A stretch of DNA of 21,870 bases from assembly GCA_964035545.1 (NCBI GenBank), contig CAXIUT010000158.1, positions 1 through 21,870 on the forward strand, read 5' to 3'. The translations under genes and the position numbers were made by a program. The notes under the pieces are model-generated. The model saw only the letters and a list, made by a program, of their open reading frames with translations. It did no database searches and had not been told where the DNA came from. Numbering within the stretch: position 1 is the stretch's first letter; every line of letters starts with the position of its first letter. Positions 6,976 to 17,966 of the stretch are shown piece by piece. This stretch comes from Bugula neritina. Taxonomy: Eukaryota; Animalia; Bryozoa.

Positions 6976-7836
6976 CTAAGTCATATACTTTTTCACCAAC
7001 TCTTCGTTCAAAACTTGATCAACAGACAATCTCTCTAACGACGAAATATCAAATGGTTTCAGGCTTTTAATATGTTTTTTTATTTCATTTGGAACTGATT
7101 GATAATATAGATAGTACGCATCTCCTTGCATTTTCTCCTTATGCCTCTCAAGAAATGGTTTTACATATTCCCAACTTCCTATTGACATATCCTCAACCTT
7201 CTTAAACAGTTTTCTCGGTGCTAGTTCCTTTCTTCCAATTAGTAAAATATCGACTGGTGGTATGATTGAAGGGATAGCATCAGGCCATACACATGCTGTA
7301 ACGACGCGGCCTTCATAATTCAGCAGCATAATGGAAGGTACAAATACATCATCAGTAACCTGTTCCTGAAGTGTCTCCTTGTTATTATTCCATACCCAAA
7401 AATCTTCCAGTTTTTTTGTAGGTAGGCAAAAAATCTCAGGATGGTTTTTTAGAATAGATTGATAACTATATTCATTCCCATGCAGCCACCCACTTCTGAA
7501 TTTATCTAAGTCAAAATTTCCCGAGCCCATTCCATTCATTTGATGGCCATTTACTTCTAGATCCAACTTTGAAATTAGCTCTAAAAGTTCAGGTTCAGCC
7601 TCTTTGATGAAATATGTTGGTCTGAAGTAGTTCATATTGAAAACAATAGGAAAATAGTCAGCTTCACTTTTTTCAAATTCTTGATACTCAAAAACGAAAT
7701 AAACTCCTGTAGCTTCATTTTGATACCAAGCTTGCTTCCCTTCTAGGTTATATTTGTCACGACCTTGAAAGTAAGAATCGAACTGTTCTTGAGAAAAGAC
7801 GCCGCTCTTTGGCTTTAAAAAAAGATCGTAACTCAT
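6976..7836 (-). CDS. Hypothetical protein
   Basis: 286-aa ORF with AAGG RBS. No family recognised. Confidence 0.75.
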   Translation of the reverse strand: MSYDLFLKPKSGVFSQEQFDSYFQGRDKYNLEGKQAWYQNEATGVYFVFEYQEFEKSEADYFPIVFNMNYFRPTYFIKEAEPELLELISKLDLEVNGHQMNGMGSGNFDLDKFRSGWLHGNEYSYQSILKNHPEIFCLPTKKLEDFWVWNNNKETLQEQVTDDVFVPSIMLLNYEGRVVTACVWPDAIPSIIPPVDILLIGRKELAPRKLFKKVEDMSIGSWEYVKPFLERHKEKMQGDAYYLYYQSVPNEIKKHIKSLKPFDISSLERLSVDQVLNEELVKKYMT

Positions 7837-7893: not shown

Positions 7894-8391
7894 TCAAGTT
7901 TGCTGACCCCTCGATTTGTTGACAAGCTTTTCAAACCTTTGAACCTCAGATAAAAAGCTGTGAAGGTAGCCAAGTGAACCCATTATGGAGGCCAGACACA
8001 GGGCAGCCTCTTCTGACATTCCGTCTATTTTCCTCGTTTCTGGGTCAAATTCCTGATCATAGATGGATGCTAATGACTGAACCGCCTTTTCTCTTCTTCC
8101 AGGTTCTAGTGAATGAGATAAAGTATTTCGTAACACATTTATCTTTTTAATTAGGTTCCACATGTTGTTGCGGTTATCGCTTACCGATATAGATTTACAT
8201 AACTCCAATTTTTGATGAAATTGAAGCCGGGCATCTTCTATGTGTTCACCATGCAGAGCGAAAGCCTCAAGGGCTTGATTCATTAAGTCTTCAGCAACAA
8301 GATGGCCTTTAAGAAGTATTTGAGCCGTGTCATCAACAAACATGACTTCTTCAGAGAATCTCTTTTGGATGTCTTCTAATGTGTCGGCCAT
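7894..8391 (-). CDS. Hypothetical alpha-helical protein with a HEPN-like Rx4H motif
   Basis: 165 aa. LLKGHLVAEDLM near the N-terminus and INVLRNTLSH (R-x4-H) in the C-terminal half, the layout of HEPN/MtlR-like proteins. Confidence 0.6.
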   Translation of the reverse strand: MADTLEDIQKRFSEEVMFVDDTAQILLKGHLVAEDLMNQALEAFALHGEHIEDARLQFHQKLELCKSISVSDNRNNMWNLIKKINVLRNTLSHSLEPGRREKAVQSLASIYDQEFDPETRKIDGMSEEAALCLASIMGSLGYLHSFLSEVQRFEKLVNKSRGQQT

Positions 8392-8499: not shown

Positions 8500-10284
8500 T
8501 TACTTGTCACTTGTATCCCCCACAGAACACGCTGCAAATCGTAAAATTGTCCCCGACTGCATGGTGAAATTTTTTACGGTGAGTACGTTGGAAAAAGTAT
8601 TTATTTCTGATTCAAGTTGTTTCCATTCGCGGCCGTTTAATGCCCATAGTTTTAGATCGGATTCTTTAACGTTATGACCGACTTCATTTCTTTGTGAATT
8701 TTCCTGTAGGTATTCAAGTTGTAGATCCATTGTTCGATCATGGTATGGAGAGAGTAACGATAAATACCAATTTCGTTGGATACAAGATTCTGAAGAATAA
8801 GTCGGTGGTAAGAGTGTTTGTGCTTGATCAATTTCTGATTCGGTACTGAATTCCGCCGGGCCGAAATCATCTTTTAAACGAATGCCACTTAAGGCAAAAC
8901 CATATGCAGGTGCGGTTATTAATTTATATTTTCCGTCTCCCGGAACGGTAGTTCGAACACGTAAATCCGTTGGGAAAGGATCACGCTCGGGTTGTTCTTC
9001 ATCGTAATTCCAGGTCGCTTTTTCGGCATCCCATTGGTATTCGCCTGTGAGTGTTTCTTTTAAATAGGCGTAGCGACGTTGTGAATAATGCCAGAGACTT
9101 TCAACTTCATTTTTGTAATCAATATTTTTCTCTTCCAGGAAGGGATCGTTTTCATGAAACGTTTCAAGCTTCGCGGCCATTTGATCGATTCTTGATTTTA
9201 ATTGATCGGGATGAAACCAACCGAAGTTAGTTTTTGATACCTGTTTTTCTATACCTAACAAATGTAATAAGCGTGCAATAATTTTTTTGTTTAGTGTTGG
9301 GTTACGAAAAACTTTTTCCTTTAATGGACTCGCAGCGCCGAGTTGTGGAGGATAATAATATTGAAAATTATCATTCAAAATACTTTTCGGAAATTCCAGA
9401 AAAGGATCCCAGTTGCGGCCAAAGCTTAGATCATAATCCCATGGAATGATGATCCATTTTTTTGTTGTTTCTGGTTGGTAGATAAAATAATTTTTATTAT
9501 AAGTGTCACCATTGCTGGTGAGGATGTTAAGGGCTAGCCAGTTTAGAACAGAATCTTCATCAAAGTTTTTTCCAATGTATTGATCAAATTCTTCTATGGG
9601 CGTTTTGTTTATTCCACTGTAGGCTTCATATAATGGTGAAAAGTCATTATCACCGGGCGCAAACTTAAACCAGCAGTCATCGATATTTTTATTTTCATAA
9701 TAACGAAAATCACCACAAAATCGTGAGTCGATGGGATGAAAAAATTGTCCGGCTTTTCCTAGTCCAAAACGATCAAACAGTGTTGTATCGATCCATTCTG
9801 TTTGTAAAAAAACGCCGTGATATTTTTCATTAATATAGACACGAATATATTCGACCTTTGGACCGACCATGCCAAGATCTTCAATCATCTGCCAGGCCAA
9901 CCATTCGCGTAACATGGAACCATCGGTCGCCATTCCATCCAGAGAGATTCTTTGTTGATCATTCCATTTCTGATCGCCATCCAATTTTATGATCAGATTT
10001 TTTTTACTAAAACGCCGGGAGAAACTGCCAGAAACTTTTATTCTGCCGGATAGTTCTTGTTTGCCTGTATCGATCACTTTCACCGCAAATGAAGATTTAT
10101 CGTTGTATTCTTTTCGGAAGAGTACTTCAGCATCTAACTCATCCATGGTGAGATGTATTTCACCTATTTCATTTTGTATCGCAGCCGTTGTTTGAACAGG
10201 AAGGAAAAAAACAGACAAACAAACAAAAGATAAAATTGATCGAATTTTGTTTGAATGATTTTTTCTTGTTATATCGTTACTCAT
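8500..10284 (-). CDS. Exported CotH-family atypical kinase with C-terminal extension
   Basis: CotH motifs: IKVSGSFSRRFSKKNLIIKL, MLREWLA, VYINEKYHGVF, NGDTYNKNYFIY, IIPWDYDLSFG, RRYAYL. Start placed at ATG 10284 (MSNDIT...), 2 nt after the upstream stop, followed by a signal-peptide-like segment (ILSFVCLSVFFLPVQTTA). Confidence 0.85.
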   Translation of the reverse strand: MSNDITRKNHSNKIRSILSFVCLSVFFLPVQTTAAIQNEIGEIHLTMDELDAEVLFRKEYNDKSSFAVKVIDTGKQELSGRIKVSGSFSRRFSKKNLIIKLDGDQKWNDQQRISLDGMATDGSMLREWLAWQMIEDLGMVGPKVEYIRVYINEKYHGVFLQTEWIDTTLFDRFGLGKAGQFFHPIDSRFCGDFRYYENKNIDDCWFKFAPGDNDFSPLYEAYSGINKTPIEEFDQYIGKNFDEDSVLNWLALNILTSNGDTYNKNYFIYQPETTKKWIIIPWDYDLSFGRNWDPFLEFPKSILNDNFQYYYPPQLGAASPLKEKVFRNPTLNKKIIARLLHLLGIEKQVSKTNFGWFHPDQLKSRIDQMAAKLETFHENDPFLEEKNIDYKNEVESLWHYSQRRYAYLKETLTGEYQWDAEKATWNYDEEQPERDPFPTDLRVRTTVPGDGKYKLITAPAYGFALSGIRLKDDFGPAEFSTESEIDQAQTLLPPTYSSESCIQRNWYLSLLSPYHDRTMDLQLEYLQENSQRNEVGHNVKESDLKLWALNGREWKQLESEINTFSNVLTVKNFTMQSGTILRFAACSVGDTSDK

Positions 10285-10286
10285 TA

Positions 10287-11114
10287 TTATGGCCCCCAAT
10301 GGCGGCTGAATGTGATGCCGAATTTTGTACTTTGTCCTGAGTTTCTTCCCCATATCACACGAGAAGCAGAAACTTTATAGCGCCAGTCGTGATTGAGTCG
10401 ATCAGACCAGCTGACTTTTGCATTTAATTTGTCGTAATCCGAAAGCTGAGTTTCATCAGCAAAATCGTTATTTGTATTCCCTTCATTTTGAAAAGAAATA
10501 TCTGCGCTTAAACCCATGCTTATGCGCCCCGTCTTTCCGATGTGTCGACGAACCGTTGCGTAAGCTAAAAATTGATCCGCTGGTCCGCTCATCCATAAAC
10601 GTACCGACGCACCAGTTAGAAAATCCCACTTTGGTGCAAAGTCTCTTTCTTCTCCACGAGAAAGATAGGCCAGCCCTCCTTCGATTCCGAACTCACCATT
10701 GCCTGGTCGAGACCGGTTGCTACGTGAATAACCAGTTGGAACAATGAGCGTGACTTCCCAGGTTTTACCATTTTCGAAAACGTTAAGGCGTCCACGAATA
10801 CCGAGACGTAAATCCCCAAGTCCGCTGTAGTCCTCATCACCGCAATGTTTGTCGATCAATTCCAGGTTAGCAACCAGAGTGTGATAATAACTATATCCAT
10901 ATTCAAGCTGATGATTTGATCGAAAGGTTTGCGAGCGACAACTGGAATCTCGCAGGTTACTACTTCGGTTCCAGCTTTTATCACTGGTTGAATAACTGAG
11001 CCCACCGGAATAATAGGTTTCACCTTCCGATAACATCCACGGACTGACTGCATAACTTTCCTGCGGAATGATCAAAACAGGAAATAAAAAAAGAGAAAAT
11101 ATTAACTTGTACAT
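10287..11114 (-). CDS. Putative outer-membrane beta-barrel protein
   Basis: Signal peptide (..ESYA-V). Repeated amphipathic alternating strands (YYSGGLSYS, LEYGYS, GLGDLRLGIRGRL, VPTGY, LNAKVSWS, WRYKVSAS, FGITFSRHW). Trp/Tyr/Gly/Ser-rich. Confidence 0.7.
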   Translation of the reverse strand: MYKLIFSLFLFPVLIIPQESYAVSPWMLSEGETYYSGGLSYSTSDKSWNRSSNLRDSSCRSQTFRSNHQLEYGYSYYHTLVANLELIDKHCGDEDYSGLGDLRLGIRGRLNVFENGKTWEVTLIVPTGYSRSNRSRPGNGEFGIEGGLAYLSRGEERDFAPKWDFLTGASVRLWMSGPADQFLAYATVRRHIGKTGRISMGLSADISFQNEGNTNNDFADETQLSDYDKLNAKVSWSDRLNHDWRYKVSASRVIWGRNSGQSTKFGITFSRHWGP

Positions 11115-12160
11115 TCGCTGATTTTCCTCATAAAAAGGCTGAACGGTGAACCCCAGTGTTGATGAACAACCGCTTGAGCCAATTTATTTTGTACGGTGTA
11201 ACTTGTGTCATTTTGGCCGCCAGCTTGTGGGGAGCTGCTCCACTGCCAGATCCAGATCCCTTCGATATTTGACGATTTAGATGTGTTGGATTTTTCTAAC
11301 GAGCTTAACCAACGACGGATCAAATCTGCTTGCGTATTTGGATCTGCCGAGGGTGAAGCTGTTTCCAGCCCACGCCAATCCCAGGGTTTTGCCTCCCACC
11401 CTTTTGCTGAAGGAATGCCCACTTCGAGAATCCAGACGGGTTGTTGAAAACGTTCTGCGAGTGTTTCCAATTGTTCGGTCAGCGTATCGGTGATCCGTTC
11501 TTGCGTCATGTCGGGATACAATGTGACACCTATCGAATCAAGTAAATCCCAATGAGGGAACGCTTCAATCCCTGCAACCTCTCCCGCGGCATAGGTTAAT
11601 TTTCCAGAATAAACCGCACGCAGTTTTTTGATCAATTCTGGCCAATGCAGGCTCTCCTGAATTTTTCTTAATTCGGTCCCAATGACAAACGCATCGACAT
11701 GATAAGTTTCTGCTAGCCGTGCATAGTTTAAAAGCTGATTGGTATAATTTTCGAACCAGCTTTTTTCTTGTTCTTGACTCGAAAATGTAATCTCACCTGC
11801 CCAGGAATTGTCAATTAAAATTTGAGGTTTAAGTACACGGTGTAAGCGCTGTTTTTGCGACAGTTCCAGCGCTGCAATCAATTGTTCGTCAGTGACAGCA
11901 TCACTTTTGCTGATTTCGTCAGATTGCGGTGTGTCTTGTTTTAAAAACGGGACAAGAATAATGGAATTTGCCCCTGTCAGGCGCAAGTGCTGCATGGATA
12001 AGCAGGCGCCCGTTGAGTTCATGGCGGTGTGGCGATCCTGCAAAAAATTAAAACCAACCAGATCTGGTTTAGAAGAATAATCACAACCATACAAGCTATA
12101 AATAGTCAGGATCAAAAATAATGAACGAGGCTGGTTTATCGAATCAATTTTCATTTTCAT
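11102..12160 (-). CDS. Glycoside hydrolase, GH113-like (clan GH-A TIM barrel), probable lipoprotein
   Basis: GANSIILVPF, VLKPQI, W.GEI, WFENY, FVIGTEL (acid/base Glu), YSGKLTYAA, WDLLDSIGV..YP, PVWILEVG (nucleophile Glu), GIWIWQW, YTVQNK. LYGC lipobox-like motif. The start is probably MKMKIDS at 12160 rather than 12190. Confidence 0.8.
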   Translation of the reverse strand: MKMKIDSINQPRSLFLILTIYSLYGCDYSSKPDLVGFNFLQDRHTAMNSTGACLSMQHLRLTGANSIILVPFLKQDTPQSDEISKSDAVTDEQLIAALELSQKQRLHRVLKPQILIDNSWAGEITFSSQEQEKSWFENYTNQLLNYARLAETYHVDAFVIGTELRKIQESLHWPELIKKLRAVYSGKLTYAAGEVAGIEAFPHWDLLDSIGVTLYPDMTQERITDTLTEQLETLAERFQQPVWILEVGIPSAKGWEAKPWDWRGLETASPSADPNTQADLIRRWLSSLEKSNTSKSSNIEGIWIWQWSSSPQAGGQNDTSYTVQNKLAQAVVHQHWGSPFSLFMRKISECTS

Positions 12161-13652
12161 AGACTCGCCAGCCCGCGTAATCATAAACACGTTTGAAGCC
12201 AGTCATGCCTTCTTTATAAAGATCCGGATAAAGGAGGTTTATTCGGTCTCGGCCACCCGTTTTGGTAGACGGATCAGGTATGACGATGAGATCGGTATCA
12301 GGCCGTTGGAAACGCGTTTGAATCTTAAAGTTATCAGAAATGGGTAAGTGAAGTTGGTGAGCATCCCCTTTCGCGACGATCGCACGGTAAGCACTGCGTT
12401 CGTCGATCAATATATCTTTATTTTTTTGTTTAGTCAGCCATTCACCGAGCACTGCATCTTCATGATATAGCTCACCAGAAAGACTATTTGTGAAGGCCAG
12501 ATACCAGTGTCGCATTTCGGGCTCTGTATATTGCGCGAAACGATGCCAGCCAGAGAGTGAGCCTATTACAAGTAAAATGATCAAAGCGGGGAATTTCCAA
12601 CGCCTTGCAAATGGGATCATGGTTAATTCAGCCATGACACCAGCGCTGATCAAAGCCAGTATTTCTAATGGGTGAAACAGGAAATATTTGCTACTGGCAA
12701 AGGCAATCGCAATAACCGGATGGAATAACAAAATGATGCTGGCTTTAAGATGATTACCATAACGCGCGGCGAGTGGTAATAACAAAAAGACCACAGGGAA
12801 AAGAACGCCAAGTTGTAAAAAAGCAGCAAATAGCGGCGCAAGCCAGAGTCCACCATACTGCCTTAACCATTCAGAAGTTGGTGTGTCTTGCCAGCCACCA
12901 AGAAACGATGAATCGGGCTCGCGTGCAAAGATGAGTGCGCTTCCTTCAAAAATCCAGTTTAGATAAGCCCAGGATAAAACCGCAATTAATAGCGGCATCG
13001 CGATCATCAGATAAACACTGATTGGAGAACTTAATAAAATTTTCCGCGGGGCAATAATAGAAAGAAAGGGAACCAGTGCAATAAACAGAAACAATGCAAT
13101 AGGATCTGCAAAAAAATACAGCGCGAGAATCATACCCAGTAAGATGAATGAACGCACATCCTCTTGATAGATCATGCGTAGACATGCTCGATATAAGAGA
13201 TAAAACATCAATAAGCTGATGGCGGTATAACCACCACTGGTTGCAGCCCAAAGCACGGTTGGTTGGCTGATGATCAATAAAATAAGTAACGCCCTTTGCC
13301 ATACTGGTCGTGCGTTTCTACGCAGGTGGTGATTCCATAAAGCTAACAAGATTGCGACAGTCAGCCCTGAAATAAAATAGGGTGCGGCGGCTTGATAACC
13401 ATCTGGTAACCATGTGAATGGGATAAGCATGTAAAACGGTGCATGTGGATAGATAAAGCGAAAATGCTCCATGCGAATGGTTTCCGCATCCATCACTCCG
13501 AGCACTTTTGCCCAGCGGAACATTGCAATATCACTAACGTAATGATTACTTAATAACCACAGACTACACATGGCAAAAACCAGTGTGATCAACATCAACA
13601 CAATGAAATTATGGTGCCGACGATTGCTTGTTTCTGCGATCACCTCTGCCAT
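12144..13652 (-). CDS. Polytopic membrane protein, GT-C-like (ArnT/PMT-type) putative glycan-modifying transferase
   Basis: About 10 or more hydrophobic helices, a first loop containing YPHAP, and a soluble C-terminal domain of about 130 aa. This architecture is typical of GT-C enzymes. The ATG overlaps the GT2 stop (TGATG). Confidence 0.55.
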   Translation of the reverse strand: MAEVIAETSNRRHHNFIVLMLITLVFAMCSLWLLSNHYVSDIAMFRWAKVLGVMDAETIRMEHFRFIYPHAPFYMLIPFTWLPDGYQAAAPYFISGLTVAILLALWNHHLRRNARPVWQRALLILLIISQPTVLWAATSGGYTAISLLMFYLLYRACLRMIYQEDVRSFILLGMILALYFFADPIALFLFIALVPFLSIIAPRKILLSSPISVYLMIAMPLLIAVLSWAYLNWIFEGSALIFAREPDSSFLGGWQDTPTSEWLRQYGGLWLAPLFAAFLQLGVLFPVVFLLLPLAARYGNHLKASIILLFHPVIAIAFASSKYFLFHPLEILALISAGVMAELTMIPFARRWKFPALIILLVIGSLSGWHRFAQYTEPEMRHWYLAFTNSLSGELYHEDAVLGEWLTKQKNKDILIDERSAYRAIVAKGDAHQLHLPISDNFKIQTRFQRPDTDLIVIPDPSTKTGGRDRINLLYPDLYKEGMTGFKRVYDYAGWRVYENEN

Positions 13653-15592
13653 CAGTTAGAGCCCGTTCGTGTTATGGGTGGTGGAATTATTTCTTCATGG
13701 TCATGTGAAGTAAGTCCATGCACGGTCTTTTCCCAATAAAAAGGATCGTGAATTAATTGCCATAATGCTCGATAGGCAGCAACTGACATTAAGATCCAAT
13801 AAAGAGGAATGGTAAGCGCCCAGGGGATTAAGTTATAAAGCTGTCGTTTGAATACACTCAGGGTTGAGAGATAGATCAATATACCGTTACCGATAAGCAG
13901 GTTAAACAGACTGATATAAAGAATGAACCCTGGAAATAATAAATCTAAAGCGTGGGTTTGAGTATAGAGCCAGAAGAAGTACATAAAATATAAAAACGGT
14001 GCCATCAGTGCACTTAAGACTGCGCCGCCAATGAAAAATTGAAAACCCCAAAAAGCCCCGCTTCCGAGTGAGCGATATAGATCTATCGGGTGACGCATGT
14101 GAACCAGGTAAGTTTGCATGTAGCCTTTAATCCAACGAGAGCGTTGTCGGATCCAGTTTCCAAGATGGCTGTTTGCTTCTTCGTAAGTTGTCGAATTAAC
14201 CACACCAACACGGTAATTTAGTTGTGTATATCTTACGCCCAGATCGGCATCTTCAGTGACGTTGTAGGGATCCCAGGCATCGACTTCTTTGAGGATATGC
14301 ATTTTAAAATGGTTAGATGTTCCACCAAGCGGGATTGGGATTTTTAATGCTTCAAGCGCTGGCAGATAAAAATCAAACCATAGTGAATATTCAAGGGTAA
14401 ACATTCTTGTTAACCAGTTTTCATTCGCGTTGAAATAATTCAATCTAGCCTGAATGACCGCAGTATTGTCCGGTGCTTTTCTGAATGCGACGACAGCTTT
14501 TTTGAGTTGATCAGGTTCTGGTCGATCTTCTGCATCATAGATGGTGACTAGTTCACCGCGTGCAAAACTAAGAGCATAGTTGCAAGCTTTCGGTTTCGTT
14601 TTAGGCAGAGAGTCAGGAACCCTGATTATTTCAAATATGCCCTCTAAACCGAGCTCTTTTGCCGCTTGTACGGTTTCGTCGTCGTCATCTTCCAGGATCA
14701 GTTTTATATCCAGCTTAGATAATGGATAATCGAGATCCCTTATTGCAGAGGTAATAATGGGTAAAACTTCAGGTTCTTTATACATCGGAACCAATACAGT
14801 ATAGGTCGGCAGATCTTTATCTGTTAAGGCGGCTACTTCTTCATCCGTTACCTTCACATCAATTTGGGTGTCTCCTCCAACCCAGGCAAAAAGTATTCGC
14901 AATCCAAAATTGAGTAATAAAAAGAGACAGATAAATAAGTTTATGGCGATTAATGCTTTAATCGGCCAAAGCGTCACCGCAAGCATAAGCAGTGTAAGAA
15001 TGATAAAGATCCAGATTAACTGTGCCGTTGTGAAAACTTGTTTTGCGGAATTGACGGGTTGCTTGTTGGCGAGATCATTAACGGCATTATCAACTAAGAA
15101 ATCTTTTGCTTCTCGTTGGACAATCCAGATGATGTCAAACTTAGAGGTGATTACAAAATCATATTCACCGTCGGTTTGTTCGTGCATATAGTAAACCGCT
15201 TCCGGTGAAGGATCGGCACAAACAAAGATCGTTTTGTCTTTTTCTTTTCTATACGGAAGGACTAAATGTTCGGTGTAATGATCAATTTCCTCATCATGCC
15301 ATAATGATTTATCGGGAGGTACTTCCATCATATTGATGAAAGGCTTGTTATATTGCCCGGCAAGTACCCGATAAAAGGCAAATGGTTGTACCCAACCTTT
15401 TGAGATCAAAATGTCTCCAAGTCGGGTTCCCCATTTTTGCTGTAAAGCGAGCGCCTTTTCCAGATGATCGGCCGTAATTAAGCCTTTTTCAAGCAAGAGT
15501 TCACCCAAAGGAATGAACTTCGTCGATTTACGATCGGGCGATCCAGGTGGAACGTTTGCTCCAACGCCTCTATCAGAGGTGTCGTCCGCCAT
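13652..15592 (-). CDS. Processive GT2 polysaccharide synthase with N-terminal MshEN (c-di-GMP-binding) domain
   Basis: Cellulose-synthase-like motifs VLVPMYKE, EDDD, TKPKACN, IYDAED (DxD), LGGTSNHF, VTEDADLG, RQRSRW (QxxRW), WEKTVH. Two TMs precede and several follow the GT domain. Tandem MshEN motifs at aa 28-80. No PilZ domain. The ATG overlaps the upstream stop (TAATG). Confidence 0.92.
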   Translation of the reverse strand: MADDTSDRGVGANVPPGSPDRKSTKFIPLGELLLEKGLITADHLEKALALQQKWGTRLGDILISKGWVQPFAFYRVLAGQYNKPFINMMEVPPDKSLWHDEEIDHYTEHLVLPYRKEKDKTIFVCADPSPEAVYYMHEQTDGEYDFVITSKFDIIWIVQREAKDFLVDNAVNDLANKQPVNSAKQVFTTAQLIWIFIILTLLMLAVTLWPIKALIAINLFICLFLLLNFGLRILFAWVGGDTQIDVKVTDEEVAALTDKDLPTYTVLVPMYKEPEVLPIITSAIRDLDYPLSKLDIKLILEDDDDETVQAAKELGLEGIFEIIRVPDSLPKTKPKACNYALSFARGELVTIYDAEDRPEPDQLKKAVVAFRKAPDNTAVIQARLNYFNANENWLTRMFTLEYSLWFDFYLPALEALKIPIPLGGTSNHFKMHILKEVDAWDPYNVTEDADLGVRYTQLNYRVGVVNSTTYEEANSHLGNWIRQRSRWIKGYMQTYLVHMRHPIDLYRSLGSGAFWGFQFFIGGAVLSALMAPFLYFMYFFWLYTQTHALDLLFPGFILYISLFNLLIGNGILIYLSTLSVFKRQLYNLIPWALTIPLYWILMSVAAYRALWQLIHDPFYWEKTVHGLTSHDHEEIIPPPITRTGSN

Positions 15593-17742
15593 TAGTAACG
15601 ATCCCGATGATCCCTGTGTTGTCTTGCACGTCTAAATAAGTAAACGATGATCAATGTCAGAATCAACCAGCCAATGGCAAACAACCAGAAACGGTACTTA
15701 CCAAGTAAGGCTAACCAATCTCGCGCCTCTGGGTAATGCGTTGTTGCAAGTGTTGGTTGTTGACTGTTCATGGTAAACAGCAAACCAGAGCGATCTGCAA
15801 AGGCAACATCATCATGATTCAGGAATAATTTCTTGATATCAGGAAAGCCTTCCTTATTTGTCGAGCGCAACCATAGCCCTTTTTGTTCTTTACTTGTGAC
15901 GAGTTGAGCGATTGTGACATCGGGAAGATCTTCAACTTTGAGTAGCGGAGTTTTGTTGCGATCTATTATCTGTACTTCACCTTGATCAAATTTTACCGGT
16001 GACTCAAGACTGTCTAACTTAAGGTCGCCAATAGCAATAAAAGGTCTCTCAGGTATAACGAGTGAGCCCGTTTCTGAAAATTTAGCTACGCGCGTTTTGA
16101 AAGGCACAGGTAGCCGTGACGTTAAAGCTGATACATAAGGTAAAGAATCAAACGGTACTTCTAAGTAATTTTCTGGCAGATAAATATCAAAATTGTCAGC
16201 AAAATATACGGGTAGTTCAGAAAAGAACTTAGGTTCACTTTGGTCACGCTCAACTATAAGTGAACTGTCAGGAAGAATCTGTACAGGAAAAGCGGCTAAA
16301 TCGGCTCGGCAATCTCCTTGAGGGTCTATATTATGAACCTGGATTTGAATTCGGTTATAAGGTTCTTGATAGTTTAGTGGCAAAGGAATAGAAATTTCCT
16401 GACGGGTTTGACCATCAACCAGACGAGTTGCGTAGATCATAATGTCGTTTAAATAAACGTATAATTCAAACGGTGGTTTTTCCGGCGGTGGCGGTGCCAT
16501 GATATTCAGGAATAATCGATTTGGTCTTGTACCCGCAGGGATACGGAACGGATCTAACACTAGATTCCACTTGAGATTAGATCGAACATAACGCGTAGAG
16601 GTGTCAGCCCCTAAATCCGCCAGTTTTATCTCAAGGGTATTTTCAACAGCAGGTATACTGCCAAGGCCGCTGAGGTTATCAGCATAGTCAACAGTAAAAG
16701 ACTTATATTGTCCGTTTATGCCTAATTTACGCCAGGGGTTATTCATCAACTGAAAAGCGCCGGTCTGTTGAGGATCAAGAATAGCGATCAGGCTACGCAC
16801 AGGGCTTTTCACCAATGCCATGTTGGAAGTCTTGATATCTTCGCTCAGTGTGTAGCTATTACTTTCCTTATGTTCAAGATCAACAAGTTCTTGCTGGAGT
16901 AGTTGTTCAAGCTCAGTATGTTTTGCCACAACGATATGGCCAATTGCGGGAAATTTTACGACTTCAACTTCTTTTCCCTGGCGTTTGAGGTTGTCTAATA
17001 ATTCCCACGCAGCATTAAATTCCGCTGGGTTAAATTCACGATCAGGGATAGATAATGAGATCTTGCGAGGCATGAGAGTCCAGGCGTCGCGTAGAGAACC
17101 TACTTCACCTGAGTAATGCATGGTGAATGTTGATTCCGGATCAATATGTAAATTACTGCCATTTACACGTGAATCTAAACAACGATCTTCCGAGATGGGT
17201 AGTGCTGCACGAACAACAAGGCGCACGCTGCCATTACGTAAATATCTTTTTGGTATATCAGCAATTAATAGCTGATCTATTCCTTTTGAACTAAGGCGAA
17301 CTTGTTCAAGTGGGAAGTTATCAACTGAGAGTTGTAAATTTGCAAGATCATTGAGAAGAGGAGAAATTCGATACTTCAGGTGAATATTTGCATTTTCAAT
17401 GGTCGTATCACTCGGTAGAGGAAAGTCGAGTTTGACCTCGTGTATGGTTTCCGCACCTTCAAAAATAATGCCTTCTTTATAACCTATATCACCGAGTTGT
17501 AACGTAAAGCCATTTAAGTTTTGTTGATCAGCATTGATAAAATCGTTTGATAACAAAAAAGATGGGCTATACATAATGTTGCTGTTGTCTATCAGCATCC
17601 ACGCGGGCTTTGCATTTATAGAAATAGTAGTTTCAGCGTAAGTTGTGGAAAAGTAGCCGGTGAAAATAAAGAATACCAGCGATAAAAAGTAGTGAATGTT
17701 ATTACTAAAATGGATATGAATTTGTGATTTTTTTTGTGACAT
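15592..17742 (-). CDS. BcsB-like periplasmic co-polymerase subunit
   Basis: Signal peptide (..TTYA-E). Two repeats each starting L.D(I/L)G and ending (I/V).I.P(E/D)S, with one Cys in each (EDRCLD, QGDCRA). C-terminal TM anchor FWLFAIGWLILTLIIVYLF followed by RRARQH. Lies directly upstream of a GT2 synthase. GGGAG RBS. Confidence 0.75.
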   Translation of the reverse strand: MSQKKSQIHIHFSNNIHYFLSLVFFIFTGYFSTTYAETTISINAKPAWMLIDNSNIMYSPSFLLSNDFINADQQNLNGFTLQLGDIGYKEGIIFEGAETIHEVKLDFPLPSDTTIENANIHLKYRISPLLNDLANLQLSVDNFPLEQVRLSSKGIDQLLIADIPKRYLRNGSVRLVVRAALPISEDRCLDSRVNGSNLHIDPESTFTMHYSGEVGSLRDAWTLMPRKISLSIPDREFNPAEFNAAWELLDNLKRQGKEVEVVKFPAIGHIVVAKHTELEQLLQQELVDLEHKESNSYTLSEDIKTSNMALVKSPVRSLIAILDPQQTGAFQLMNNPWRKLGINGQYKSFTVDYADNLSGLGSIPAVENTLEIKLADLGADTSTRYVRSNLKWNLVLDPFRIPAGTRPNRLFLNIMAPPPPEKPPFELYVYLNDIMIYATRLVDGQTRQEISIPLPLNYQEPYNRIQIQVHNIDPQGDCRADLAAFPVQILPDSSLIVERDQSEPKFFSELPVYFADNFDIYLPENYLEVPFDSLPYVSALTSRLPVPFKTRVAKFSETGSLVIPERPFIAIGDLKLDSLESPVKFDQGEVQIIDRNKTPLLKVEDLPDVTIAQLVTSKEQKGLWLRSTNKEGFPDIKKLFLNHDDVAFADRSGLLFTMNSQQPTLATTHYPEARDWLALLGKYRFWLFAIGWLILTLIIVYLFRRARQHRDHRDRY

Positions 17743-17877
17743 TTCTGACTCCCCTCGATAGCCTTCACCCAGAATACTACCACTTTATTTGTGAGATCGT
17801 ATTTTTAGCAGTAGATCCTCTGTAAAAAGAAGTAAATTTCACTAAAGAAGATGATTAAAATCAATACGTTTTTTAGG

Positions 17878-17906
17878 TTTCAAAGCTGACCGATCCCTCG
17901 TATAAT
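17878..17906 (+). promoter_or_regulatory. Putative sigma70 promoter of the ndk operon
   Basis: Perfect TATAAT at 17901-17906, with a weak -35 (TTTCAA, 17878-17883) at 17-nt spacing. GGAG at 17951-17954. Confidence 0.55.
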
Positions 17907-17966
17907 CCCCGACGGCTTTTCTTTAACACTTTTTAAGACCGAATTACCCTGGAGATGGACAAGTAA

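Follow-up and report, generated by a model that had tools for sequence, protein, structure and literature searches.

The Xag and Sfz gene clusters

A six-gene operon for a putative synthase-dependent exopolysaccharide system lies on the minus strand of contig CAXIUT010000158.1, a stretch of 21,870 nt (throughout, the window is this whole stretch) from the Bugula neritina assembly GCA_964035545.1. Comparing it with its closest described relatives joins two literatures that barely cross-refer, the genetics of xag-dependent biofilm in Xanthomonas and the sfz/sfb 'stalk' genes of iron-oxidising bacteria. In Xanthomonas, xagABCD is a biofilm polysaccharide operon (Tao et al. 2010, as cited in other papers). 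Its genes are up 3- to 14-fold in an X. oryzae pv. oryzicola mutant of rpfG, which encodes an HD-GYP phosphodiesterase of c-di-GMP (cyclic dimeric guanosine monophosphate), and the elevated biofilm of this mutant requires xagA and xagB (Zhang 2013, PMC3609779). In Roelofs et al. (2015), xagABC stands among the operons regulated by c-di-GMP, with a receptor that was not known but was predicted to act post-translationally. In stalk-forming Zetaproteobacteria, sfz1-6 encode a BcsB-like protein, a fusion of a type II secretion system (T2SS) E N-terminal region with a family 2 glycosyltransferase (GT2), an unknown protein of ~500 aa, a glycoside hydrolase, an unknown protein of ~310 aa and a protein with SH3 and CotH domains; the genes are present in stalk-forming and absent from stalk-less iron-oxidisers, and a role in the stalk has been proposed (Koeksoy 2021, PMC8250860). 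The Ferriphaselus cluster sfb1-4 was described as 'bcsB + xagBCD-like', with sfb2-4 equated with xagBCD, and stands beside a separate bcsABZC set (Kato 2015, PMC4643136).

The operon examined here is very probably a member of this Xag/Sfz family of synthase-dependent exopolysaccharide systems. It has the gene order of sfz1-6 at similar sizes, corresponds to the 'bcsB + xagBCD-like' type and is an expanded relative of xagABCD; the view of the first-pass annotation, a reading of the letters alone, that its combination of parts matches no described locus therefore does not hold. Its narrower statement, that the bcs, pga, pel, alg, crd and nfr types do not fit, is correct, and domain and fold searches recovered the set of parts it had named: a BcsB-like protein, a GT2 with an MshE-type N-terminal (MshEN) domain, a family 113 glycoside hydrolase (GH113) in place of GH8, a barrel lacking tetratricopeptide repeats (TPRs), a GT-C-fold protein and a secreted CotH protein. 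No description of this system by its components (MshEN with a glycosyltransferase and BcsB, or MshEN in a synthase-dependent system) came up in the literature searched. The cluster type itself is thus known and named, and the window adds one more copy of it; what is new here are sharper domain assignments, a link between Sfz5 and XagA, and the breadth of distribution, which together give the family a coherent parts list. The six genes, with the synthase's motifs for binding c-di-GMP, are as follows.

15592-17742, minus strand: g1, BcsB-like periplasmic partner, Sfz1 homologue, 716 aa (Pfam, profile, ESM Atlas, hydropathy)
13652-15592, minus strand: g2, MshEN-GT2 synthase, Sfz2 and XagB homologue, 646 aa (NCBIfam, Pfam, motifs)
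15353-15511, minus strand: tandem MshEN c-di-GMP-binding motifs of g2, residues 28-51 and 57-80 (pattern match)
12144-13652, minus strand: g3, membrane protein of predicted GT-C fold, Sfz3 and XagC homologue, 502 aa (AlphaFold2, Foldseek)
11102-12160, minus strand: g4, GH113 protein, probable lipoprotein, Sfz4 and XagD homologue, 352 aa (Pfam, PDB alignment)
10287-11114, minus strand: g5, predicted 12-stranded outer-membrane beta-barrel, Sfz5 homologue and putative distant XagA homologue, 275 aa (AlphaFold2, Foldseek, hhalign)
8500-10284, minus strand: g6, secreted CotH-like protein of atypical kinase fold, 594 aa (Pfam, PDB match)

The open reading frame (ORF) listing and direct reading of the junctions show six intact, consecutive and co-oriented minus-strand ORFs spanning 8500-17742, all of them full length when compared with their closest relatives. 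The stop of g1 overlaps the start of g2 in TAATG at 15592, and that of g2 overlaps the start of g3 in TGATG at 13652. The start of g4 precedes the g3 stop (12146-12144), and the two genes overlap by 17 nt if the ATG at 12160 is used and by 11 nt if it is that at 12154; the g4 stop (11104-11102) is overlapped by 13 nt by g5 (ATG 11114); and the g5 TAA (10289-10287) is followed after a 2-nt gap by the g6 ATG at 10284. Longer ORFs are possible for g4 (start 12190, 362 aa) and g6 (start 10353, 617 aa). These directly read overlaps and the 2-nt gap bear out the single operon that had been proposed, with every boundary as first given.

Comparison with the sfz and xag loci

Mariprofundus ferrooxydans PV-1 (locus L010) has homologues of all six genes in the same order, as found by blastp and hidden Markov models (HMMs): g1 at 32% identity (E 4e-126), g2 at 61%, g3 at 42% (E 3e-137), g4 at 39% (E 1e-78), g5 at 24% (E 2e-17) and the CotH region of g6 at 38% (E 1e-119). 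By exact sequence its GT2 is EAU54620 and its g3 homologue EAU54619, both within the published sfz1-6 accession range, and the gene lengths of the locus agree with Table 2 of PMC8250860. The two clusters therefore share six genes in order, orientation and approximate size at 24-61% identity. They differ in host, the window coming from a gammaproteobacterium in a eukaryote assembly rather than from an iron-oxidiser, and in the last gene, since Sfz6 has 1415-2270 aa with SH3 repeats whereas g6 has 594 aa and none. Some differences lie in annotation: the published 'EpsE-like T2SS' N-terminus of Sfz2 and GH10 assignment of Sfz4 (PMC8250860) are MshEN and GH113 here, and Sfz3 and Sfz5, left unassigned there, correspond to a GT-C fold and an outer-membrane barrel.

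In Xanthomonas (loci L018-L029), an XagA-like barrel, a GT2 with 57% identity to g2, a GT-C-like protein and a GH113 protein are encoded in that order. Naming these loci xagABCD rests on the xagBCD equivalence of Kato and on the listing of XCC0678 among MshEN proteins, since protein names in the source records are generic. On this basis g2, g3 and g4 correspond by homology to XagB, XagC and XagD, and g5 has a distant match to the protein in the XagA position. Unlike the window, Xanthomonas lacks an adjacent BcsB-like gene and CotH, and its barrel gene comes first rather than fifth. Among the relatives, xag is the only one with genetic evidence of function, namely biofilm under Rpf/c-di-GMP control.

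The synthase and its predicted c-di-GMP module

The N-terminus of g2 scores 65.6 bits on NF053729, the model of an MshE-related c-di-GMP motif (cut-off 38), and contains two 24-residue copies of the MshEN motif, separated by a 5-residue linker, each agreeing at 11/11 constrained positions with a regular expression written from the pattern of Wang et al. (2016) as quoted elsewhere. The protein continues with Pfam GT2 matches and the motifs KPKACN (333), DAED (353), TED (446) and QRSRW (483). Hydropathy places transmembrane segments at 190-208 and 519-606, for a layout of cytoplasmic MshEN domain, transmembrane segment, GT2 catalytic domain and C-terminal transmembrane segments. A second helix is needed for the MshEN and GT2 domains both to be cytoplasmic; the family consensus suggests one, below the hydropathy threshold in g2. 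When searched against PDB, the g2 family profile matched the N-domains of MshE (5htl), PilF and PilB and, separately, the catalytic region of BcsA (BcsA residues 273-575). It is thus well supported, at the level of domain homology, that g2 is a processive-type membrane GT2 in which a canonical tandem MshEN motif replaces PilZ, and the same homology would predict gating of the enzyme by c-di-GMP. The proposal of the first-pass annotation that the operon encodes a c-di-GMP-gated machine for a non-cellulose exopolysaccharide is likewise well supported by domain and fold homology.

The c-di-GMP motif is not peculiar to the window. The Xanthomonas GT2 carries the MshE-type motif at 41 bits (cut-off 38), Sfz2 of PV-1 has the motif too under current models, and XCC0678 appears, labelled 'NrfB', among the MshEN proteins in the supplement of Wang et al. 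(2016). In the literature searched, we found no paper connecting the MshEN domain of XCC0678 to xag. For the xag receptor foreseen by Roelofs et al. (2015), the MshEN domain of XagB and Sfz2 offers itself as a candidate. A GT2 with an MshEN-type module is also found in NfrB, which with NfrA forms the Escherichia coli N4 glycan receptor synthase (PMC8669472); however, the module of NfrB is C-terminal, its similarity to g2 is limited to that module (g2 24-128 against NfrB 479-582), NfrA is a large TPR porin, and Nfr has no BcsB, GT-C, GH113 or CotH protein.

The GT2 homologues of Aurantimonas manganoxydans (L038:9935-11941) and Mucilaginibacter (L077:9995-11839) keep a PilB/T2SS-E-type N-domain and fall below the MshE c-di-GMP-motif model at E<=1e-5, so that c-di-GMP control may have been lost or altered in these branches.

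The BcsB-like partner and the exported proteins

The gene for g1 adjoins that of the synthase, as is the case for BcsB. Pfam recognises a BcsB domain (PF03170) at residues 80-210 (5.5e-17, 61.8 bits, cut-off 21), and the protein has an N-terminal signal peptide and, by hydropathy, a single C-terminal transmembrane anchor at residues 685-703. A family profile built from 36 homologues matched only BcsB chains in PDB, weakly (6yg8, E 9e-4), while phmmer of g1 alone against PDB sequences gave no match; in the ESM Atlas, BcsB families are the closest clusters (score 0.96). The Pfam domain, the exclusively BcsB profile matches and the ESM Atlas clusters all agree with the earlier identification of this 716-aa protein as BcsB-like.

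The hydrolase g4 belongs to GH113 (Pfam 2.6e-43, 148.9 bits, cut-off 27) and aligns with the solved GH113 beta-1,4-mannanases 4cd6, 3civ and 5ylh at E ~1e-22. Its GTE and LEVG align with GCE and MEVG of 4cd6, both of them Glu-bearing motifs, and we take this Glu pair to be the acid/base and nucleophile, as in AaManA. With its lipobox-like SLYGC, g4 is probably a GH113-family lipoprotein. PV-1 Sfz4 also scores as GH113 under current models. In Xanthomonas, the endomannanase ManA disperses biofilm, and the nature of the xag polymer is still to be established (2019 review, PMC8042644). Because of this mannanase sensitivity and the GH113 membership of the hydrolase, the product would most likely be not cellulose but a polymer of the beta-1,4-mannan-like or glucomannan-like type, which provides a testable guess at its identity.

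No Pfam or NCBIfam family was found for g5 by sequence. Its AlphaFold2 model is a 12-stranded outer-membrane barrel (predicted local distance difference test, pLDDT, 82) and the protein has a signal peptide; Foldseek returned the COG4313 channel 4rl8 (TM-score 0.72, E 4e-11) and FapF, and the ESM Atlas matches are 'transporter' clusters (TM-score 0.82). The family profile of g5 matches P0136 of Xanthomonas, a 340-aa protein encoded upstream of the GT2, over 261 columns (hhalign probability 98.2%, E 2.9e-14). Given this match, and taking P0136 as XagA from its gene position, Sfz5/g5 is by profile similarity a distant homologue of XagA, a link absent from both Koeksoy 2021 and Kato 2015. C59 and C91 of the window g5 are nearly invariant in this small barrel family, which suggests a conserved loop disulfide.

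The last protein, g6, has an N-terminal signal peptide and a CotH domain (Pfam 9.5e-51, 173.6 bits, cut-off 23.8, residues 105-431 of the long ORF), and matches CotH of Bacillus cereus (5jd9, E 4e-21) with the PWDYD segment kept. Pfam finds CotH only and no SH3 domain in g6, whereas PV-1 Sfz6 is an SH3_3 plus CotH protein; short forms of CotH are present as well in gammaproteobacterial loci and at a second locus of Mariprofundus micogutta. The latter species, strain ET2, has two full six-gene copies on different contigs (L009 and L070), one encoding a CotH protein of the long SH3 type (1636 aa), the other a short, window-like one (685 aa).

Distribution and the conserved core

An alignment scan of species-representative genomes with the GT2 found at least 600 stretches, of which 597 were confirmed among the matches listed. 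The family spans Gamma-, Beta-, Zeta- and Alphaproteobacteria, Acidobacteriota, Bacteroidota (Mucilaginibacter), Aquificota, Synergistota, Bacillota and others. Family HMMs were then used to count neighbours within 8 kb of the GT2 in the best 79 of these 600 or more loci, 54 of which have full flanks.

GT-C-like protein: 66 of 79 loci; 47 of 54 full-flank loci
BcsB-like protein: 59 of 79 loci; 42 of 54 full-flank loci
Barrel: 49 of 79 loci; 39 of 54 full-flank loci
GH113 protein: 34 of 79 loci; 30 of 54 full-flank loci
CotH protein: 14 of 79 loci; 11 of 54 full-flank loci

From these counts, the core of the system is the GT2 with the GT-C-like and BcsB-like proteins, usually accompanied by the barrel; GH113 is frequent, and CotH belongs to one clade. 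On the GT2 tree (a quick IQ-TREE run with a midpoint root used for drawing only), all CotH-bearing loci fall in a single 19-row clade of Gamma-, Beta- and Zetaproteobacteria that includes the window (99% SH-aLRT). Within it, the window and its 90%-identical relative, a metagenome-assembled genome (MAG), lie beside Mariprofundus (94%), and the sister clade (96%) contains Xanthomonas and the Acidobacteriota. The six-gene set is also found in Thiohalomonadaceae, a Piscirickettsiaceae MAG and a Burkholderiales MAG, and in Thiobacillus except for GH113. Co-conservation in other genomes, which had been put forward as a check on the operon, is thus found: further Gamma-, Beta- and Zetaproteobacteria have the same six genes, identically ordered, so that neither is the arrangement due to chance nor is the cluster peculiar to stalk-forming iron-oxidisers.

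The GT-C-fold protein as a probable partner of the synthase

No Pfam or NCBIfam model matches g3. Its AlphaFold2 model (pLDDT 91) has a GT-C fold followed by a C-terminal periplasmic domain, and all significant Foldseek matches are GT-C enzymes, namely ArnT (TM-score 0.52-0.55), DPY19, STT3/PglB and AftA; ESM Atlas neighbours include PMT_2 clusters (TM-score 0.83). The family is large, with 1621 cluster representatives at E<=1e-3. The first-pass annotation had seen in g3 an added modifying enzyme; because g3-type genes are the most frequent neighbours of the GT2 (66 of the 79 loci), the protein is better read as a core partner. Such a constant GT-C-fold partner has no counterpart in characterised synthase-dependent systems.

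A more ambitious reading follows this association further, and we regard it as possible but rather doubtful: the synthase would need the GT-C-like protein as its third subunit, which would use a lipid carrier to branch or cap the chain in the periplasm, and the product would be a beta-1,4-mannan-like polymer which, in the Gamma-, Beta- and Zetaproteobacterial clade, is phosphorylated by CotH. Its basis is that the GT2 has the GT-C-like gene beside it more often than the BcsB-like one, in Pseudomonadota, Bacteroidota, Bacillota and further phyla. If true, Xag/Sfz systems would form a distinct class of synthase-dependent machine in which a c-di-GMP-gated GT2 is coupled to a GT-C protein, and the Xag polymer of Xanthomonas and the organic matrix of iron-oxidiser stalks would be one kind of material.

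A 400-aa GT2 (Glycos_transf_2) is encoded directly upstream of the XagA-like barrel gene in Xanthomonas cucurbitae (L018:7568-8770); it could supply a lipid-linked donor to the GT-C-like XagC.

Proposed mechanism

Domain homology and topology are the basis for the following mechanism. Four of the proteins are predicted to be exported, g1, g5 and g6 by signal peptides and g4 by its lipobox, and g3 is membrane-spanning. Binding of c-di-GMP to the N-terminal MshEN domain of g2 in the inner membrane would relieve inhibition of the enzyme, which would then polymerise a beta-linked glycan from a nucleotide sugar and thread the chain across the inner membrane. On the periplasmic side the chain would be received by the membrane-anchored g1 and by g3, the latter acting as an obligate partner whose part is either to modify the chain, drawing on a lipid-linked donor, or to give structure or guidance. 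The lipoprotein g4 would trim or release the chain, the XagA-like 12-stranded barrel g5 would be its exit through the outer membrane, and the secreted g6 may modify, perhaps by phosphorylation, either the polymer or a protein associated with it.

Several observations weigh against this scheme, or against parts of it. The Xag/Sfz family is biochemically uncharacterised in every member. The BcsC, PgaA and AlgE polysaccharide porins have 16-18 strands and usually TPRs, whereas g5 is narrower, with 12 strands and no TPR; the solved folds nearest to it move hydrophobic compounds or unfolded protein, and its Foldseek match to the polysaccharide outer-membrane secretin 4y25 ranks only 44th. Sequence searches recognise only the first BcsB domain of g1 (residues 80-210). 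Across 38 homologues, the first periplasmic loop (EL1) of g3 lacks any acidic residue close to invariant: positions D41 and E62 are acidic in only 63% of them, being kept in the Gamma-, Beta- and Zetaproteobacterial (sfz-type) clade and replaced in alphaproteobacterial members. The best-conserved residues, D417, R428, D469 and R496 (of which D417 and D469 are acidic), sit in the C-terminal domain. Because no acidic residue of EL1 is conserved family-wide, g3 may not be catalytic. Finally, RNA runs searched for window DNA gave no transcript evidence, which is not proof of silence.

Modelling of a complex between the GT2 and the BcsB-like protein, suggested earlier as a check, gave weak support. 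The predicted pairing of g2 with residues 430-716 of g1 reached an ipSAE of 0.36 against 0.00 for the best control, a mark attained by 51/78 solved complexes and 2/108 mismatched pairs; values <=0.60 are more often wrong than right unless the pairing is already likely. The partner pLDDT was at least 61 and runs shared at least 75% of contacts. There is some signal, then, below the reliable range, and we treat the predicted interface as weak and do not count it as evidence of binding.

Alternative explanations

The lipid-linked donors of known GT-C enzymes are products of GT2 enzymes, and this raises the question of whether the operon serves periplasmic glycosylation of the Gtr/Arn/Pmt kind, with g2 loading polyprenyl phosphate and g3 transferring the sugar to a protein, lipopolysaccharide or glycan acceptor. 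The GT-C-fold gene is indeed the most constant neighbour of the GT2, and ArnT, PMT and YfhO are among the structural neighbours of g3. By contrast, g2 has the processive signature (TED, QRSRW) and several C-terminal transmembrane segments, and it aligns with the catalytic and gating region of BcsA; to our knowledge, polyprenyl-phosphate GT2s are short and have no QxxRW. In g3 the catalytic Asp of EL1 shows no conservation, the presence of a glycanase, an outer-membrane barrel and a BcsB-like partner suits polymer export, and xag mutants lose a biofilm polysaccharide phenotype. We therefore consider glycosylation improbable.

A divergent bcs operon, making ordinary or modified cellulose with g2 as BcsA, g1 as BcsB and g4 in place of BcsZ, is less probable still, and we give it very little weight. 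The resemblance in design is real: both have a processive GT2 with TED and QxxRW, an adjacent BcsB partner with a C-terminal transmembrane anchor, a glycanase, an outer-membrane barrel and activation by c-di-GMP (predicted for the window). Besides the BcsB Pfam domain of g1, the best solved relatives of the g2 catalytic domain are BcsA chains, and source annotations call g2 homologues 'cellulose synthase/PNAG synthase-like'. However, sequence similarity to bcs is remote, and g2 scores 42.6 bits on the CelA model against a cut-off of 699. Its MshEN domain is N-terminal and PilZ is absent, whereas PilZ is C-terminal in BcsA; a 12-stranded TPR-less barrel stands where the 16-stranded TPR porin BcsC would be, and there is no GH8, the hydrolase being of the beta-mannanase family GH113. 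The GT-C-fold protein and CotH are extra, and consistent linkage to a GT-C-like gene is absent from bcs operons. Moreover, Ferriphaselus keeps its separate bcsABZC besides the cluster.

The least probable reading, that the operon is a machine dedicated to twisted stalks (organo-mineral filaments) in a bacterium that forms iron-encrusted stalks, takes support from the position of the window GT2 beside Mariprofundus and from the sfz1-6 architecture that separates stalk-forming from stalk-less iron-oxidisers, but it is opposed by the occurrence of the set in Thiohalomonadaceae, Piscirickettsiaceae-like and Burkholderiales bacteria and, GH113 apart, in Thiobacillus, and of the core in Xanthomonas, sphingomonads, Acidobacteriota, Mucilaginibacter and Aquificota, none of them known stalk-formers, as well as by the absence of the Sfz6 SH3 repeats from g6 and by the origin of the window, a bacterial contig in a eukaryote assembly with near-identical DNA in a 'symbiont metagenome'. 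Instead, the spread of the family over at least about 600 species' genomes argues that Xag/Sfz is a general adhesion or biofilm polymer system and not a stalk-specific device.

Genomic setting

The operon is preceded by one further feature, whose role is assigned by position only.

17743-17966, no strand: intergenic stretch from which g1 and ndk diverge; presumed promoter and 5' leader of the operon

Scanned against Rfam, the window as a whole gave no family at the gathering threshold, and hence no c-di-GMP riboswitch ahead of the operon; promoter and terminator scans gave sites no more numerous than in shuffled sequence. Downstream of g6 are two minus-strand ORFs, 7894-8391 (165 aa) and 6976-7836 (286 aa), which have no significant Pfam match and no homologue in 80 related loci and are probably outside the system.

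The upstream neighbours ndk-rlmN-TPR-rodZ-hisS are common to the window and to a 3.33-Mb metagenomic contig (L082), its closest complete relative, which has the operon at the same place, at ~79% DNA identity to the window (92% for the GT2). Past the operon, this contig encodes a rve-family transposase, a response-regulator-PAS-GGDEF-EAL protein and a hybrid histidine kinase (L082:17192-21944); this would be a local c-di-GMP module, absent from the window at the corresponding position. The window genes for the TPR (PilW-like) protein, rodZ and hisS each have one frame change relative to their orthologues on the same contig (20062-20068, 20681-20747 and 21677-21681). Contig depth is ~3.7x in the probable source run. 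The frame changes are most likely due to indel errors, with gene decay in a symbiont as the alternative.

The window is the whole of a 21.87-kb gammaproteobacterium-like contig within a 216-Mb, 321-contig eukaryote assembly. Its DNA is near-identical (mostly >=99%) to sequence in two runs from a separate study of 2016, on a 'symbiont metagenome', and because of this the source bacterium may be associated with the host and not a contaminant present by chance.

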